Shown: positions 10,922-20,800, counted from the first letter of the stretch. The stretch is 64,000 nucleotides of DNA from Phaeosaccion multiseriatum (GCA_965112735.1 OZ218957.1:1984001-2048000); one strand, 5' to 3'. Translations and numbers: made by a program. The notes: generated from the sequence alone by a model not told the origin.

Positions 10922-13085
10922 TTACGCTGACACGTGGAAGACTTTGGCCACGCGCAGAGGGGACGGGGATGACAGAGGAAACAGAGGGGGTACAGGAGGA
11001 GGCAAAGCGGAGCTCTGGAGGGTGTCCTGTAGCATCAGGCTATGAACAAACGCATTCAGTGCCACCATGGCCTGCACCAGACCTCCTCCTCCTCCTCCTC
11101 CTCCCCCTTCTCCTCCTCCTCCTCCTCCTCCTCCTCCCCCTTCTCCTCCTTCTCCTCCTCCTCCTCCTCCTCCTCCTCCTCCTCCTCCTCCTCCTCCTCC
11201 TCCTCCTCCTTCTCCTCCTCCTCCTCCTCCTCCTCCTCCTCCTCCTACTGCTGCTGCTGCTGCTCCGGACGAAGGAGAGGAAGGAGACGAAGACAAGGCT
11301 CCTCCGCACAATGAGGGGGTCCGTGGAAAGACAGCCAGCTCGGAGAGGATCGGATCCCCTCCCGGCAGGGGGTCGAGGAAGCCCGTCACATAGGCCGGTG
11401 ACACGTGGTGACAGCACGACGGGTGACAGAGAGAAGTGGAAGAGGCAACACGCCCGCCCCCCTCCCCCCCTCCCCCTGCTCCTCCTCGAAGCTGCAGCAC
11501 CACAACGGTTGACATAAAGGCGAGATACCGGAGTGCAAGGAGGCGCTGTCGAGCAAAGTCCCAAGCAGAGTCGTCTGTGGCGGCTCTGATCGCAAAGGCC
11601 ACTTCCAGCGCGAGCAGACGGGCCAGTGGAGGGGCCTCTGCTGCTGCTACTGCTGCTGCTGTATCACCAACTGCTGCGGATGGAGTGACAGCCGCAAGCA
11701 AGGCTTCAGCTGAGAGCGCGGGTAGGTTGCCGCCCTCGCCCTCGCCCTCGCCTTCTTCTTCGTTGCCGCCGTGGTCGTTGTGGTTATCGTAGTCGTCGTC
11801 GTCCTCACAGAAATGTGCCAAGCTCGCATCGTAGTGACGCTCTGCTGCCCCGATCCACTCATCCCAGTCGCAGCAGGCCTCCGAGTGGCCGATACTCTTC
11901 ATGTGATGAGGCGTTAGCAGCATGAGCATTGCCTGGATGACAAAGCGGCGATAGCTCCACAGACTCTCGTGGGCAGGGTACATGCACAGCAGTTGCTCCA
12001 AGAGGGAGAGCTCGCTGGTGAGGAGAGTCACAGCACCCCCTCTTTCCTTCCTTCCCTCCTCCTCTTCGCTCTCCTCCTCCTGGAGGATGGCCGCAACGAG
12101 GAGGCGACACACGTTCTCCCTGTGGTTCAAAGCAGAGTGGTCTGACACATGCGTCCGCAGCCAGTCTTGCACGAAGGCCATCTCATCGGCTAGGACGCGG
12201 CGCCGCTCCTCGGCACCCGCAGCAGTTGGTGATACAGCAGCACCGCGGCAGAGATACTGCTTAACGATCCAGAAGCGGTGCGTCCAAGCGTAGTAGTTTT
12301 TGGGGTACAGCTCTGCCACCCGCTGACACAGGCCAAGCTCACGGAGGAGAGACTTCGCATCAAACGTGAAACCGGTGGTTTGTATTTGCGCCTGCGCGTG
12401 CTTTTCCTGTTGCCCTACCCCGCCGAGTCTCTGCATCCAGCACCAGCGGCGGTGTGCCCACGCGTTGGTGCTCTTGGAGTGCTTCGTAAAGAGTAGGTCC
12501 AGCAGCCTCAGCTCATCCTCCACGGTCGCGGCTCCTGCGATCACGGCCTCCTTTCGTGCGTTCCAGGCCGCCCCGTTGTCGGCATTGACGAGCAAGAGCG
12601 CACGAGAAGCACTCAAGAGGCGAGCATGCGAACATTCCTCTGCACCTGCTGCCGCTCCTGCTGCCGCTCCTGCTGCTGCTGCTGCTGCCGCAACCTCTCT
12701 GACAGCATGTACTTGTCCTCTCGCTGTGGCAAAGGCAGCCCTCGCCTCCGTAATGAGCTCGTGCAGCCTGTCCGCATAGACGCCCAGCTTGTGCGCTTGG
12801 CACACAAAGGCTGGGCCACCGCCTACCTCGTCGCCGCTGGAGAAAACAACTCCCAGCTCATCACTGCAAGCAAAGTCATGGACGTTTTGGTTGGGAAAAG
12901 AGCATACGCGACTTAACTTTAACCTATGCCCATCCTCTCGTGATCACGTCTGTCGTCAGTGTGCTGAGGACTGAGCTGCAAAGGGAGTGCTGAGAAGGGC
13001 TTGAGCGAGAATGTACGTACATGAAGGGGTCCTTCGAGAAGATGATGTCCAGCTGCTCCAGCAGTGGCAGCGACCCCGCCATCAT
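10922..13085 (-). CDS. PTAR1: Protein prenyltransferase alpha subunit repeat-containing protein (GGTase-III alpha, PTAR1-like)
   Basis: Exon 1 13085-13021 (MMAGSLPLLEQLDIIFSKDPFI), GT-AG intron 13020-12864, then DELGVV..HKLGV. PPTA repeats LLVNADNGAAWNARK, HSKSTNAWAHRRW, YPKNYYAWTHRFW, HVSDHSALNHRE, YPAHESLWSYRRF. The 3' end is low-complexity and uncertain. Confidence 0.85.
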
Positions 13086-13215
13086 CACATCACAGCCGTG
13101 TCATTATGTACATTCTTGGTTGTGGCTTTTTTCTTTTTTTCTTTTTTTTTTCTTTTCCAAATAATCCATACTCTGTGAATCATGGAGCACCAACCCTCCT
13201 CATTTTTTGAGTCGC
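13086..13215. promoter_or_regulatory. Candidate compact bidirectional promoter (PTAR1 / PPR-SAP)
   Basis: 130 bp between divergent ATGs, containing a T-rich tract at ~13127-13156 in otherwise GC-rich DNA. Confidence 0.55.
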
Positions 13216-15495
13216 ATGGGCTTGGCGGCCTTCCTTTCCGCCGGAGCGGGAGGAGGGTCCTCGACAAGCTCACGGGGAGGATGGACCTCAGCTCCCCCCA
13301 CCTCTTCATTTGCCGTGCACCGTGAAGAGAACTCCTTTCTCACAGCCGCCGTGTCTGTTGAGCGAGGATCGTCGACTCAATCGCTCCGCCTCCTTGAAAC
13401 CAGGCTCGATACATCCGGGAATAGAAAGGCGGCGGAGGCCAAAAATAGAGAAAAAGCGTTGTTCAAAGAGATCCAGAGACTTGGAAATACGCGCAACTGG
13501 AGGGGGGTCGGGAGGGCGATTGAGCAGGCCAAAGCAGAGGGGACTCGTATGAACAGTTTTCATTATAACGCTGCGATTTCTGCAGTGGGCAAAGCTCGGC
13601 GATGGAAGGGCGCGGTGGCCCTGCTCAAGGAGATGCGGGCGGAAGGGCTTCAACCCAATGAAGTCCCGTACAGCTCTGCGATTTCTGCTTGCGGCAAGGC
13701 TGGAGAGTACGAAAAGGCGCTGGACTTGCTCAAGGAGATGCGGACGGAAGGGCTTCAACCCAATGAAATCTCGTACAACTTTGCGATTTCTGCCTGCGGC
13801 AAGGCTGGAGAGTACGAGAAGGCGCTGGTCTGGCTGAAGGAGATGCGGAGGGAGGGGCTTCAACCGGATCAAATCTCGTACAGCTCTGCGATTTCTGCTT
13901 GCGGCAAGGCTGGAGAGTACGAGAAGGCGCTGGACTTGCTGAAGGAGATGCGGAGGGAGGGGCTTCAACCGGATCAAATCTCGTACAGCTCTGCGATTTC
14001 TGCTTGCGGCAAGGCTGGAGAGCACGAGAAGGCACTGGACTTGCTGAAGGAGATGCGGAGGGAGGGGCTTCAACCCAATGTCATCTCGTACAGCTCTGCG
14101 ATTTCTGCTTGTGGCAAGGCTGGAAAGTACGAGAAGGCGCTGGACTTGCTGAAGGAGATGCGGAGGGAGGGGCTTCAACCCAATGAATTCTCGTACAGCT
14201 CTGCGATTTCTGCTTGTGGTAAGGCTGGAGAGCACGAGAAGGCGCTGGACTTGCTGAAGGAGATGCGGGCGGAAGGGCTTCAACCCAATGTCATCTCATA
14301 CAGCTCTGCGATTTCTGCTTGCGGCAATGCTGGAGAGCACGAGAAGGCACTGGACTTGCTGAAGGAGATGCGGAGGGAGGGGCTTCAACCGGATCAAATC
14401 TCGTACAGCTCTGCGATTTCTGCTTGCGGCAATGCTGGAGAGCACGAGAAGGCACTGGACTTGCTGAAGGAGATGCGGAGGGAAGGGCTTCAACCCAATG
14501 AAGTCTCGTACAGCTCTGCGATTTCTGCAGTGGGCAAAGCTCGGCGATGGAAGGTCGTGTTGGCCCTGCTGAAGGAGATGCGGGCGGAAGGGCTTCAACC
14601 CAATGAAATCTCGTACAACTTTGCGATTTCTGTTTGCGGCAAGGCTGGCGAGTACGAGAAGGCGCTGGACTTGCTGAAGGAGATGCGGAGGGAGGGGCTT
14701 CAACCCAATGTCATCTCGTACAGCTCTGCGATTTCTGCTTGCGGTAACGCTGGAGAGCACAAGAAGGCGCTGGACTTGCTGAAGGAGATGCGGAGGGAGG
14801 GGCTTCAACCCAATGAATTCTCGTACAGCTCTGCGATTTCTGCTTGCGGTAACGCTGGAGAGCACAAGAAGGCGCTGGACTTGCTGAAGGAGATGCGGAG
14901 GGAGGGGCTTCAACCCAATGAATTCTCGTACAGCTCTGCGATTTCTGCTTGTGGTAAGGCTGGAGAGCACGAGAAGGCGCTGGACTTGCTGAAGGAGATG
15001 CGGGCGGAGGGGCTTCAACCGGATCAAATCTCGTACAGCTCTGCGATTTCTGCTTGCGGCAATGCTGGAGAGCACGAGAAGGCACTGGACTTGCTGAAGG
15101 AGATGCGGGCGGAAGGGCTTCAACCCAATGTCATCTCATACAGCTCTGCGATTTCTGCCTGCGGCAATGCTGGAGAGCACGAGAAGGCGCTGGACTTGCT
15201 GAAGGAGATGCGGGCGGAAGGGCTTCAACCCAATGTCATCTCATACAGCTCTGCGATTTCTGCCTGCGGCAATGCTGGAGAGTACGAGAAGGCGCTGGTC
15301 TTGCTGAAGGAGATGCGGAGGGAGGGGCTTCAACCCGATGAATTTCTTGTAGCGAGACCGTTACAGAAAGACGAGGCGCGTAAGCTGAAGGTGCCTGAGC
15401 TGAAGGCCGCCCTCAAGGCTCAGGGCTTGCCTGTCAGCGGAAGGAAGGCCGAGCTCATAGAGAGACTCACCAGTGCGGCAGCGGCATCAGTTTGA
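13216..15495 (+). CDS. P-class pentatricopeptide repeat protein (17 tandem PPRs) with C-terminal SAP domain, intronless
   Basis: 35-aa repeats xxSYSSAISACGKAGEHEKALDLLKEMRREGLQP[N/D]; C-terminal KLKVPELKAALKAQGLPVSGRKAELIERL (~15382-15468) fits the SAP consensus. First in-frame ATG is 13216 (in-frame stop at 13162). Confidence 0.93.
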   Translation: MGLAAFLSAGAGGGSSTSSRGGWTSAPPTSSFAVHREENSFLTAAVSVERGSSTQSLRLLETRLDTSGNRKAAEAKNREKALFKEIQRLGNTRNWRGVGRAIEQAKAEGTRMNSFHYNAAISAVGKARRWKGAVALLKEMRAEGLQPNEVPYSSAISACGKAGEYEKALDLLKEMRTEGLQPNEISYNFAISACGKAGEYEKALVWLKEMRREGLQPDQISYSSAISACGKAGEYEKALDLLKEMRREGLQPDQISYSSAISACGKAGEHEKALDLLKEMRREGLQPNVISYSSAISACGKAGKYEKALDLLKEMRREGLQPNEFSYSSAISACGKAGEHEKALDLLKEMRAEGLQPNVISYSSAISACGNAGEHEKALDLLKEMRREGLQPDQISYSSAISACGNAGEHEKALDLLKEMRREGLQPNEVSYSSAISAVGKARRWKVVLALLKEMRAEGLQPNEISYNFAISVCGKAGEYEKALDLLKEMRREGLQPNVISYSSAISACGNAGEHKKALDLLKEMRREGLQPNEFSYSSAISACGNAGEHKKALDLLKEMRREGLQPNEFSYSSAISACGKAGEHEKALDLLKEMRAEGLQPDQISYSSAISACGNAGEHEKALDLLKEMRAEGLQPNVISYSSAISACGNAGEHEKALDLLKEMRAEGLQPNVISYSSAISACGNAGEYEKALVLLKEMRREGLQPDEFLVARPLQKDEARKLKVPELKAALKAQGLPVSGRKAELIERLTSAAAASV
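13555..15339 (+). repeat. 17 x 105-bp near-identical coding tandem array (PPR motifs)
   Basis: Exactly 1785 bp; units share long identical DNA stretches such as tacagctctgcgatttctgcttgcggc and ctggacttgctgaaggagatgcgg. Confidence 0.97.
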
Positions 15496-15952
15496 AGAAC
15501 AGCTCTGTCCTTGGCTGGCTTTGGCTGGTTGGTTGGGAGGAGGGCGGTAAGGCTTGGTATCTGAGCTTGGCTTGGTTGGTAGGTAGGTAGGAAGGAAGGT
15601 AGGTAGATAGGTAAGCAGGCACGCAGGTACGTAGGTAGGTAGGCAGGCAGGTAGGGGAGGGGGGTAGGAAGCGGTGTTTGTTGGTGAGGGGGGTGCGGGC
15701 GAAGCGAAGCAAGGCGTAGTGAGAGGCAATATCGTAGGGTGCGCGTACTGGACAGGGGCGGAGGAGAAACAAAAGGAGCAACAGATAAGAGAAGAGAAGA
15801 AAAAAAGGAGTGAACGCAACCAGACCCTCTATCATTATTATTTTATTGGTATTGTTTATGGATAATCTTCACACCGCTTTGCGGACCACCGGAACGGTGC
15901 AAATGCCACACATTTTGGGCGTGAGCGGTGCTACGCGAGCAGGTGCGGAGCG

Positions 15953-16027
15953 CAATCATCACTGTCAGGGGCTCCCCAATCATCACTGTCAGGGGCTCCC
16001 CAATCATCTCTGTCAGGGGCTGCCCAA
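15953..16027. repeat. 24-bp minisatellite x3
   Basis: caatcatcactgtcaggggctccc twice, plus a third copy with two substitutions, between the convergent gene ends. Confidence 0.9.
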
Positions 16028-16249
16028 GGTAACAGTAAAATTGAAAATGAAACTCCGAAACTTCGGTCCGGCTTTTGATCTAGCTGCGATTCTCTGAAGC
16101 AGCAGCAGCAGCAGCAGCAGTAGCAGAAGCAGCAGCAGCGCTCCCCCGCCCGGTGTGATGACACTCACACTCTTACAGACCGGCCAGACAAAGCAATCGC
16201 ACCACCCTCACCATCCTGTCTCACCCTCGCACTCTCTCGCCCATATGGA

Positions 16250-17801
16250 TCACTCGTCGGTGTGGTCAGTCTCACCCATGAACGAGCGCTGCATGGTGTG
16301 AAAGAAGCTCTTCGCTTTGTCTCCCAACGCCACAAACGCCTCGCCCACAGCCCTCAATGCTTGCGTGCTGGATGGGCGGTGATGGATAAGGATAGGAGGG
16401 CAGGGGAGCGAGGGGTAGCGTATGGGAAGAGTAATCAGGGGAGGGAGGACCATGCCCACCCAACGGCAAGAGATACACCACTGACCATCCAAAGAAACAC
16501 AATGCGGCAAGAGATACGCCAATGCCCATTCAAAGAGACACAGCATGGCAAGAGATACACAAAACACGCCCACTAGGGGCCGCGCCTTTGGATGGAAGGA
16601 AAAAAGCGAGGAGAGAGAAGCAAGAAAATTCCAACGAGAGCAACCCAAGCAGGGCACCCAAGGAGAGCGCAACCCACGTTGTGCAAAAGAAACATCGCTC
16701 CACCCGCCTCCCATCAGCTCTCTCTCTTGTCTCTCCCCCTCCCCCCCCCCCCGCCCCTCTCTCTCTCTTGTCCTACTGATCCGTACCTGCTACGGACTCG
16801 AACAGTGATCAAATCCGTGTCCGCCACAAACTGCGGGGGGTTGGAGCTACGACACAGCGTCATGACCTGCGGCTTCAGAGTCACATCCATCCCCTCTTCT
16901 GTCTCCTTGCCGCGCCCCGCGCCCTCCTGGCTGTTGCTCCACGGCAGCTCAGGATCTACTGCCGACACGATCCGCGTGACGATCTCGACGGTCTGCACAC
17001 GCAGCTCAAGGTCCTTCGGGGCCCTATCCAACCACTTTGACGCCACCTCCAGCATCGCTGCCGCCGTTCCCTCGCCCTCGCCTTCGCCTTCGCCTTCGCC
17101 TTCGCCCTTGGCCTTGCTCGCTGCTGCTTTATCACTAACTGCTGCTGTTGTCGCTGCTGGTGCCACAACCACCCCGCCAACCTCTTCCTCCCTCCCCCTC
17201 TCTGCCGCGGCCGAAGCTGTTGCTGCATCACCACCTGCCGCTGATGCCGCTGCCGCCTCATCCGCCAATCTGGCAGCCGAGAGCTGGACAAGCTTGCTTC
17301 GCACCGCTTCCACGCCGTCCCCCCCTGCCGCCGCTTCGTTCGCCACCCCAAGGACCGCACTAGCAATCCTGGACACCGGGTTGGCGCTGAGCTCTACACG
17401 GTCTGCTACTCGTGTGAGAGTGCCCAAGAACTTGACCGAAACGAGGAACATTTTCCTGGCCCCGCGTAGGCCGTGCTCCTTCTCAGACAGGTCCTCCTCC
17501 TCCTCCTCCACTTCCTGCCGTGCTCCTCCTCCTCCTCCTCCTCCTCCTCCTCCTCCTCCTGCTCCCACATCCTTCACCCTCCTCCCTCTCCTGTCGTCCA
17601 TCATCACTTTCAACGATTCTAGTACGTCAGGTGTGAAGTTGCCCACCACCTGACCCATCGTGGTGTGCCATCGAAACGTCGGCAGAGCCGCCTTCACACG
17701 GCCGCTTCCATCCGCCACAGCGGAGAGATGCGTAGTCAATTGGTGAGGATCGCACATGACCCTACTCAGGAAGAAGTGATTGTCCATGCCGGCGTGGACA
17801 C

Positions 17802-17841
<40 letters not shown>

Positions 17842-20800
17842 CCCCAGTTGCTGCCCTCCCGCTCCCATGATGGACGTTCCGGATAGACTGTCCGTGAAGA
17901 AGAAGCTCGACAAGCGCCACTCCGCCCACACCCACCCAGTCTCCTCGTTGACTCGTACATCAAAGCCAGCACTCGCCGTCGCTCCCACCAGCGCCTGCCT
18001 CGCCCCGTCCCGGATGGGCTCTCTTAGCTCCACCCCTACTTCGGTGAAGAGCACGCTGGTGGCGGGCAACTCCCAGAAACGCTTGAGCGCCCCCTCCAGC
18101 GGGTCCTTCTTCTCCTTCTCCTTCTCCTTCTTCTTCTTCTGCTGCTGCTTGCTGTCATCGCTCCCGTTGGTCCCATTGGCACCAAACGCAGACGCCGACC
18201 CACCATTCTCACTTGGGGCCAAGCTACTGGGCACTGCCGCCGAAGAAGATGCAGCAGCAGCGTCGACTTCGGCAGCAAGGGGGCGAGCAGCGACCATTCC
18301 ATCCGCGTCATCCAATTGGTCATCCTCCTCGTCGTCGTCATCGCTGTCCGAGAAGCCCTTGTTATCCGCAAAGAGGCCCAACTTTTGTCCGTCCTTGCTA
18401 AAGAAGTCTGCCCACATTCCCTCCGCCCCTTGACCATCACTTCCCTCCTCCTCCTCGTCGTCGTCGTCGTCGTCAGACACCTCCTCTACTGTATTTGACG
18501 CTGCGGCAGCCGCCGCCTCCTCGTCAGCGCCGCTCATTCCCTTCCTCCTTCTCGACGACACCTTGCCCCCCTCCCCTGCAAGGAGACTCGCGCGAATCTC
18601 ATCGGCCTGGTCGTAAAAGCTTCGAAAGGCCTCGCCGTTGGCAGTCCGGGCGGGATCCCACATCACCACCCCCGCCGACGCCTTTTGGGTCCGCACGACG
18701 CTACTAGCCGCCCCTGATCCTGCTGGTGAAGCCGATCCTTTCCCTCGCGGCGCCCCCCCCCCCACACCCGCCCCCAAACCCCCAGCGTCGACACTTCCCA
18801 TCCCTGTGCGCATGTGCCGATGTGCCGCCACTCGGCCAATCGCCCTAAAGAACAAAATGTCATCCACCGGCAGGCAGCAGTCCAGGCGGGCCAGCTCCCA
18901 CGCCTCCTCGTAGGAAAGAGGCCGCATGACGGGCACACCCAGCCTCCGAGGGTCGAACTTTTTGTGCAAACGTGAGGCCTTGAGCGTCCTCATGTACAGG
19001 ACAATGTAACGATGCCTGATGGCAGACGTGCCGCTGCTAGCAGAGGCCCCAAAGGTGCCCATGCCGTCCTGCAGCTGCTGCATGGGTTGCATCTCGGCCA
19101 TTCCCTCCATGTCATCCACTTCCTCCTCCTCTTCCTTCATCTCCTCGTGGTCCGGCTCCGGGGCCACCTCCGGCTCTCCCTGCGTGGCCCAGTCCGGGCA
19201 CTTGAGCAGCGCCCCCGTCGGTCGCGTGATGAGAGCGCCCTTCCAAGTGGAGAGGGGTCTCTGGCGAGAGGAGGAGGAGGAGGAGGAGGAGGAGGAGGAG
19301 GAGCGTTGCTGGCGAGAGACAGTGTCATACACCACGCCAATGCACCAATGCCAAGCAGCGGCAGCCCACGCGTCACCGGGGTGAGCCTTCTTGATGGCAG
19401 CAATGGCGCTCTCTCCTCCCGTTTGAGTACTGTTTCTCCTACGTGTATCACCAACTGCTCCTGATGCTTCGCCACCACCCCCTTCCATCATCCGCTTCTC
19501 TGCCTCTGCCTGAGCTGCTGCCGCTGCTTCGGGTACCAGCGGCTTCTTCTCGCTTGCTGTGGTGGCGGGAGAGAGTCCAAACACATCCAGTAGGCCTCCG
19601 CCAAAGCCCGAGCTTGTCTTTCGAAGCCCCACAGACCCCCCTGAGCCCCTCCTGCCGTCGCCATTGAGCGAAGTGGGGGGCTCCACCAGCCTGAAGAGGG
19701 AGGGAGGGAGGGAGGGAGGGAGGGAGGGAGGGAGGGAGAGAGGGAGGGAGAGAGGGAGGGAGGGAGGGAGGGAGGGAGGGAGGGAGGGAGGGAGGGAGGG
19801 AGGGAGAGAGGGAGGGAGGGAGGGAGGGAGGGGGGGAGGGAGGGAGGTAGAGGAACAATGGACGCAAGTGTCGGTTAAGTCAAGCAGCGACCGAGGCGCA
19901 AAGGCCCATTGCCCCATCTTCTCGAAGTCATTCCATACTCATCCATCCACCCACTCACTCACTCATAGACGCACTCACTGAGACACACACACAATCACTC
20001 ACTCACGCACTCACTCACTCACGCCCTCGCTCACACACACTCACACACTCACTCACGCACTCACACGCTCACATGCTCGCACACTCAAGCACTCAATCAT
20101 TCACTGACTTGTCCGCTCCCTCACCCCCTCACTCCATCAAGGCCCGCTCGCTCACCCCCCCCCCTCCCTTACGGTCCATCTCACGATCATCACCCACCTG
20201 GGCAAGAGATATTTGGCCTCTCCGGCCTTGAACTCAAATTTGGGAGGCAGTGTGTCCTTCGGCAAGTCTGCCCTTGGCACCATCCACCGATATGTGGTCT
20301 GTCTAACCAACCGATCCAATACCCTCACGGCTTGCTCTATCACACCAGCCTGCCTTGCGTCCATCACCATCTTCAACACGCCCACCTTGACACTGATCCT
20401 CCCCAACCGAAACGTCGGCAGTCCCAGCCCCAGCCCGGCTGCCACTGCCTTCCTCCTCTTCTTCTTCTTCTTCTTGGAGCTGCTACTGCTGCTGCTGTGG
20501 CTGCTGCCCCCGATGTCACCACCACCAGTGGCGCCGCCACCGCCGCCGCCACCGCTGCCGCCGCTGCTGCTGCTGCTACTACTACTGACTGGCGCGGGCG
20601 GCGCGGTTTCCGCGATACGCACGACGCCTTTAATCTCCAGCGGTAGGAACAGAAGCGTATGGCGCTCGTTGAGCCACTTGTGCTTCAGCAGGGCGGCAAT
20701 GTCGCCTGTCGACAAGGACGCCGCGGCGCCGCTTCCCTCGCCAAAGTACCTCGGGACTCCGTAGTCGCAATAGAGTTGGAGGTGCGTCAACGCTACCCTC

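Follow-up and report, generated by a model that had tools for sequence, protein, structure and literature searches.

A Uniform PPR Array Joined to a Putatively Captured SAP Gene End in Phaeosaccion multiseriatum

Introduction

P-class PPR proteins ending in an SMR domain, such as PAP2/pTAC2, GUN1, and SOT1 of plants, are among the closest described counterparts of the PPR-SAP gene examined here, which lies in a 64,000-nucleotide stretch of DNA from Phaeosaccion multiseriatum (GCA_965112735.1 OZ218957.1:1984001-2048000). This stretch is termed the window and supplies all coordinates unless another sequence is named. The PPR-SAP protein shares the P-class PPR array with the PPR-SMR proteins, and PAP2 is among its best solved matches (8r5o, E 4e-83), whereas it has neither an SMR domain nor a remnant of one and carries a SAP domain in the place of the SMR. 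The gene branched from a large PPR family and has exchanged a domain; it is not a demonstrated re-aimable reader, and the locus shows a change of architecture, not yet a new function. On balance, and with some reserve, it is read as a nuclear chimera of a PPR-SMR-family array with a captured SAP end, lengthened by unequal crossing-over.

The combination of PPR motifs and a SAP in one protein is shared with PAP1/pTAC3, a subunit of the plant plastid-encoded RNA polymerase that has twelve PPR motifs and a suspected DNA-binding SAP (bioRxiv 10.1101/2024.10.25.620210; PMC4080259) and is the sole described PPR plus SAP architecture found. Unlike in PAP1/pTAC3, the repeats of the PPR-SAP protein are near-identical, not degenerate, and the two fusions arose independently; PAP1 is absent among the solved-structure matches at E 1e-20. 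An HMMER search with the last 95 amino acids gave 150 hits swamped by PPR proteins, with no SAP in the six that were run through Pfam, a tail-only word search returned three SAP proteins, none with PPR, and the Atlas clusters contain PPR only and no PPR-SAP. These blanks for PPR-SAP proteins outside the genome are not proof of absence.

The uniformity of the array places it beside designer or consensus PPRs (cPPR-Telo1, 5orq and 5orm; dPPR, 5i9f; dPPR10, 6een), which likewise have near-identical 35-amino acid repeats and the same pairs of code residues at positions 5 and 35. The top PDB matches are synthetic consensus PPRs (5orq, E 9e-123; 5i9f), followed by PPR10 and PAP2. The PPR-SAP array differs from the designer proteins in being natural, with about half of its residues identical to the synthetic consensus (judged by eye) and many positions outside the code varying. 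Because cPPR-Telo1 binds single-stranded DNA, the choice of RNA or single-stranded DNA as ligand, offered in an initial annotation made from this DNA alone, is kept. Among natural proteins, dinoflagellate PPRs also contain long runs of very similar repeats, with a mean within-protein repeat identity of 0.74 in P0045 (ENA assembly) and 0.70 in P0050 (Symbiodinium sp. Y106) compared with a median of 0.33 for 172 other PPR hits, but they are only about 45% identical to the PPR-SAP protein. By eye, P0045 has an SMR-like tail.

Two further systems share the mode of change. RFL genes form expanded, clustered, and recombining P-class families with 15-20 repeats, and the family of the PPR-SAP gene is of the same expanded, clustered, recombining P-class kind; it differs in showing no excess change at code positions, and the PPR-SAP gene stands outside any cluster and has no known mitochondrial target or partner in conflict. 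TAL effectors resemble the PPR-SAP array in their tandem near-identical repeats, one base per repeat, with a repeat number altered by recombination, but fold and nucleic acid differ, and variation in the PPR-SAP array is not restricted to specificity residues.

Results and Discussion

The PPR-SAP Gene

The window sits on contig 8 (C8) of a eukaryotic assembly of 67 Mb in 22 contigs that includes a mitochondrial contig (C17) and plastid contigs (C18-C22); the host is a photosynthetic alga, probably a stramenopile. A single open frame extends over 13207-15495 on the plus strand, and its first ATG at 13216 gives a product of 759 amino acids. The parts of the gene are listed below, where the donor is the SAP gene described in the next section and X5 is a sequencing run of a second sample.

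13216-15495, plus strand: PPR-SAP coding sequence (759 amino acids plus stop), one open frame
13216-13449, plus strand: N-terminal region, amino acids 1-78, rich in Ser, Thr, Gly, and Ala, with the first acidic residue at amino acid 37
13450-13554, plus strand: degenerate cap repeat ("repeat 0," amino acids 79-113), from the repeat register; modeled helices 55-91 and 95-107
13555-15339, plus strand: 17 PPR repeats, each exactly 105 nucleotides (35 amino acids), from Tandem Repeats Finder and the repeat register; predicted code YAUGAAAGAAYAAGAAG
13555-13659, plus strand: repeat 1, of the "first-repeat" type (helix B ...AVGKARRWK...), from repeat comparison
14500-14604, plus strand: repeat 10, a hybrid, from repeat comparison
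15304-15304, plus strand: C missing in run X5 (second sample), giving TGA, from a unitig
15340-15345, plus strand: Glu-Phe, the first two codons of an 18th repeat and the point at which the array breaks off, from the repeat register and donor alignment
15351-15370, plus strand: 20-nucleotide piece of the donor SAP gene, read one frame off, from alignment with the donor
15382-15485, plus strand: 104-nucleotide block 100% identical to the donor 3' coding end and encoding the SAP (Pfam, amino acids 723-753, nucleotides 15382-15474)
15508-15723, plus strand: 3' flank colinear with the donor 3' flank at an identity of only 74-84%, from alignment

Tandem Repeats Finder reports a period of 105 with 16.4 copies and 90% matches over 13622-15342, and when cut in structural register the array resolves into 17 units of exactly 35 amino acids with no indel in 1785 nucleotides. 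Pfam assigns PPR_2 (E 7e-164, 17 stretches) and PPR (E 7e-147), with PPR models down to E 1e-128, and places the SAP domain (PF02037) at amino acids 723-753 (E 1e-12, 47.7 bits against a cut-off of 23.9). By profile the product is both a P-class PPR protein and a SAP domain protein, and the 17-repeat array with a SAP tail described in the initial annotation is real. No Pfam Smr match occurs in the protein, and tblastn with the SMR tails of paralogues detects no SMR remnant in 15300-19000 or elsewhere in the window.

The N-terminal region is related in DNA to that of subfamily paralogues (77% identity with L015 and 89% with L027), and amino acids 1-78 are a possible targeting peptide. Three-frame translation of 450 nucleotides upstream of the PPR-SAP gene and of six paralogues revealed no signal-peptide exon before the conserved "GFI/AAF" motif. 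In a single-sequence AlphaFold model of moderate confidence (predicted local distance difference test (pLDDT) 65.5) the array forms regular helical hairpins, and the pLDDT lies below 50 for amino acids 1-69.

Origin of the SAP Tail

The array ends two codons, Glu-Phe, into its 18th repeat, at which point it passes into sequence from the 3' end of the donor L022, a SAP gene without PPR repeats located on the same contig 386 kb further along. The donor reading frame (L022:385-1614, plus strand, G000:C8:~2384567-2385796) is of low complexity, rich in Glu, Gln, and Arg, and ends in a SAP domain (50.2 bits); a search for homologues of the donor outside the genome found none, and neither of the NusG profiles PF02357 and TIGR00922 matched anything in the genome. 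The block at 15382-15485 matches L022:1507-1610 (G000:C8:2385689-2385792) at 104 of 104 nucleotides. Upstream of it, the 20-nucleotide piece at 15351-15370 reads ...SETVTES... in the donor and ...ARPLQK..., one frame off, in the PPR-SAP gene, and the donor frame resumes before Lys-Leu-Lys-Val. The identical block, the colinear flanks, and the frame-shifted donor piece indicate that the SAP tail is a captured gene end, joined out of the donor frame and returned to it by small indels. With a captured 3' end that is read partly out of the donor frame, the SAP fusion is not a designed architecture. The SAP block and linker derive from a local non-PPR gene, and the fusion is therefore independent of that in PAP1/pTAC3.

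The perfect block lies amid diverged flanks, which points to recent gene conversion or re-copying. At the divergence of the flanks, about 20%, the block should show about five synonymous differences, but it has none.

The junction between PPR array and SAP is real. Read evidence consists of short unitigs from DNA-like runs, which cover the unique 5' part (12900-13600) and the junction (15306/15308 to 15411/15485). Three runs of one study match these edges without differences, and X5, from a second study, spans the junction with two differences. Read depth over the 104-nucleotide block is about double, as expected for two copies.

A Sister Copy and Recombination of the Array

A second copy of the fusion, L027:1453-2669 (minus strand, G000:C8:~829840-831060), lies on the same contig about 1.17 Mb upstream. 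Its N-terminal region, 89% identical in DNA to that of the PPR-SAP gene, differs by a proportion of 0.152 at synonymous sites (pS) and 0.094 at nonsynonymous sites (pN), its repeats are 92-97% identical to those of the PPR-SAP gene, and the junction of array to donor is identical in both. L027 is truncated at the 5' end, and a poly-Lys insertion in repeat 1, a frameshift in the last repeat, a TAG at the junction, and a decayed SAP further mark it as a clear pseudogene. Since the two copies have the same junction, one fusion event preceded the duplication. L027 holds 8 repeats against 17 in the PPR-SAP gene; repeat number and order have therefore changed between constant flanks since the duplication.

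Internal traces of the same process are found in repeat 10, which is a hybrid with nucleotides 1-29 of the core type (28 of 29) and nucleotides 30-105 of the repeat-1 type (72 of 76). Among 20 paralogues only the PPR-SAP gene has two repeats of the first type, and repeat 10 is the sole internal one. It is best described as the scar of an unequal crossover that placed a second array head inside the array. The four-gamete test is failed by 82 of 153 pairs of informative sites, which likewise argues that recombination reshapes the array. Recombination-driven change between constant flanks, the check proposed with the initial annotation, is thus borne out, with the same head and junction enclosing 8 repeats in one copy and 17 in the other, the hybrid repeat 10, and the four-gamete failures.

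A Large PPR-SMR Family as Source

The PPR-SAP protein has at least 104 matches in its own genome (482 candidates), many of them clustered, whereas the PPR-SAP gene itself is solitary in the 64-kb window. The closest genomic relatives are PPR-SMR genes with 47-79% protein identity and a common N-terminal region and repeat type, and this kinship indicates that the gene descends from the PPR-SMR family of its own genome. An SMR tail is present in 15 of the 19 paralogues compared; three have no SMR and one has a remnant. The paralogue arrays use almost only the pairs SN, SD, ND, and NN at positions 5 and 35, in an order that is different in each.

Proposed Course of Events, Maintenance, and Decay

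In the reading favored here, the source of the nuclear PPR-SAP gene would be this large, lineage-specific, mostly SMR-ended family of P-class PPR genes with homogenized repeats. A rearrangement may have broken an array after the second codon of a repeat and fused it to the final ~170 nucleotides and 3' flank of the unrelated SAP gene, with loss of the SMR tail. The join would have been out of the donor frame, small indels would have returned the SAP to frame, and a recent gene conversion or re-copying could have made the 104 nucleotides identical to the donor. The fusion would then have been duplicated, the L027 copy (8 repeats) decaying and the PPR-SAP copy staying open, and unequal crossing-over would have lengthened the latter array to 17 repeats. 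The sequence comparisons themselves establish the gene's anatomy, its chimeric origin, the shared junction, the recombination scars, and the family context. In the protein, the PPR solenoid is predicted to bind a purine-rich single strand at one base per repeat by the canonical 5/35 code, and the helix-extended-helix SAP, if used, might anchor the protein unspecifically to DNA or the nucleoid, a role proposed for plant PAP1/pTAC3.

The gene appears to be under moderate purifying constraint, because pN/pS is 0.47 among repeats and no indel occurs in 1785 nucleotides while the sister copy decayed. The value of 0.47 is for the core repeats at a pS of 0.146; against the pseudogene partner pN/pS is 0.61 (pS about 0.15). 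In the reference strain the gene probably encodes a PPR protein that works, but it is doubtful that the SAP tail matters.

Several observations weigh against the chimera as a maintained PPR-SAP gene. In X5 a C is lacking at 15304 and C is replaced by G at 15316 at all X5 depth there (one unitig, one run), and the deletion at 15304 leads to a TGA and a 696-amino acid product without the SAP tail. L027 reaches its TAG at the junction, which leaves the in-frame SAP seen only in the reference, where it may be a 1-in-3 chance frame. The modeled SAP tail is of low confidence (pLDDT 31-43). The antisense strand of the array also has frames of 325 and 275 amino acids, and the open frame over the periodic array is weak evidence, since any unit free of stops will yield a long open frame when repeated 17 times. 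The order of the repeats within the array comes from the assembly alone, short unitigs being unable to span it, and the predicted 17-nucleotide target has no exact match anywhere in the assembly, whether nuclear, mitochondrial (C17), or plastid (C18-C22).

Some of these points would also be explained if the gene were a young chimera heading to decay, a tail-less PPR-SMR leftover whose frame stays open through periodicity and conversion from working paralogues and whose SAP is a functionless read-through accident. This account is unlikely, though it has to be taken seriously: the sister L027, which shares the junction, is plainly a pseudogene, the second sample has the premature TGA at 15304, tail loss is recurrent in the family (L004, L008, L016, and L015), and a donor piece is read out of frame. 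It fits poorly with the pN/pS values of 0.47 among the repeats and 0.61 against the pseudogene partner at a pS of about 0.15, and with the lack of any indel or stop over 2.3 kb although the other plus-strand frames are closed. Moreover, a join that was out of frame has apparently been corrected so that the SAP is read, and the block has been kept the same as in a seemingly functional gene.

At the other extreme, the capture might be a working domain swap in which the nuclease-type SMR is replaced by a DNA or nucleoid anchor that tethers purine-rich RNA or single-stranded DNA to DNA. This can be put forward only tentatively, as slightly less probable than decay; if true, the PAP1/pTAC3 layout would have been invented a second time here, with compensating indels and gene conversion with the donor preserving its frame. 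Under the chimera reading the locus is a dated example of tail exchange, with the SMR lost and a SAP gained from a nearby gene, and its surviving intermediates (the frame-shifted donor piece, the pseudogene sister with the same junction, the conversion tract, and the truncated allele) illustrate how new PPR architectures arise.

Repeat Uniformity, Code, and Target Search

The 15 core repeats have a mean DNA identity of 91%, and to these the initial description of near-identical repeats applies; it does not extend to repeats 1 and 10, which form a distinct "first-repeat" type with 86% DNA identity to each other and only 64-78% to the other 15. Variation affects about 14 of the 35 positions in the core repeats and 24 in all 17.

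In the PPR code, S or T at position 5 with N at position 35 specifies A, S or T with D specifies G, N with D specifies U, and N with N specifies C or U. The 5/35 pairs of the array are NN,SN,ND,SD,SN,SN,SN,SD,SN,SN,NN,SN,SN,SD,SN,SN,SD, so that only the canonical SN, SD, ND, and NN occur in the 17 repeats, and the code applied to them predicts the target YAUGAAAGAAYAAGAAG; pairs and target are exactly as first noted. The most variable array positions are 1, 29, 2, 13, and 17, followed by 35, and position 5 differs in only 2 of the 15 core repeats; a clustering of variation at the code residues is not supported. Natural arrays this uniform, with only four canonical pairs, resemble laboratory designer PPRs and would be useful material for PPR engineering, and they show repeat proteins changing specificity by recombination.

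Diversity was compared over 92 repeats of the same type pooled from seven genes, where pairwise counts on converting repeats are rough. The overall ratio of nonsynonymous to synonymous diversity (piN/piS) is 0.39. In nonsynonymous diversity position 5 ranks 10th and position 35 ranks 8th of the 35 (piN/mean piS of 0.55 and 0.63), and both are exceeded by positions 9, 1, 29, and 13. The code positions are balanced two-state sites, with S 60 : N 29 at position 5 and N 51 : D 37 at position 35. Code residues toggle, yet variation extends beyond them, and the term "TALE-like" used in the initial annotation fits the uniformity of the array but not the pattern of variation, which is not confined to specificity residues.

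The scan of nuclear, mitochondrial, and plastid contigs for the 17-mer did not support the predicted target. Over the whole assembly there are 6 sites with up to one mismatch compared with 4 for a control and 66 with up to two mismatches compared with 67 for a reversed-pattern control. Two plastid sites match at 15 of 17 positions (C18:80236-80252 and C18:87620-87636, minus strand), where about 0.2 are expected by a rough estimate from composition, and these are a weak lead only. The mitochondrial contig C17 has no site at up to two mismatches. As a separate observation, C17 carries cox1 four times, about 53-59 kb apart with one copy inverted, an arrangement that suggests an assembled concatemer of the mitochondrial genome or a set of its isomers.

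These data bear on the proposal of an adaptive reader in the manner of RFL genes or TAL effectors, in which diversifying selection at code residues tracks viral, selfish, or organellar RNAs and the SAP is a purposeful effector module. The large, clustered, recombining family, the separate code order of each member, and the balanced states of positions 5 and 35 are in keeping with it. It is nevertheless improbable, as the code positions rank 10th and 8th with piN/piS of 0.55-0.63 against 0.39 overall while positions 9, 1, 29, and 13 vary more, the gene is solitary in the window, the target site is not found in the assembly, no viral or selfish element is linked to the gene, and the SAP is missing or unreachable in two of the three versions. 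Nothing points to the conflict with viral or selfish RNA that had been proposed, and the RFL analogy fails on the absence of both a code-position excess and cluster membership.

It is very improbable that the array or the PPR-SAP join is an assembly artifact, a mis-join of paralogous repeats. Such an error would account for the breaks of unitigs within the array, for the many reads that can be placed twice, and for a few joints of low depth that leave out 316-738 nucleotides. However, unitigs cover the unique edges at 12900-13600 and the junction at 15306-15485, the 104-nucleotide block has the doubled depth of two copies, the odd joints have depths of 7-10 against about 100 with sides under 31 nucleotides, and L027 carries the same junction independently.

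Surroundings of the Gene

No second PPR array occurs elsewhere in the 64-kb window, and the neighboring genes of the PPR-SAP gene are poorly conserved. The antisense open frames of 325 and 275 amino acids (13306-15123, minus strand) are not genes but follow from the periodicity of a unit without stops. The divergent neighbor at 10922-12805 (minus strand) codes for a PPTA protein (protein prenyltransferase alpha-subunit repeat, E 3e-32) that contains long runs of Gly and of Ala, and the 410-nucleotide intergenic region shared with it contains a pyrimidine tract at ~13126-13160. In the 3' flank, 15574-15671 is a (GGTAGG/GGCAGG)n-like tract that matches well over 100 sites with 72-88% identity; these occur on most contigs, frequently as tandem blocks, and their distribution marks the tract as a dispersed simple satellite. 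Just 3' of the gene, a 24-nucleotide unit is repeated 3.1 times with 96% identity at 15953-16027.

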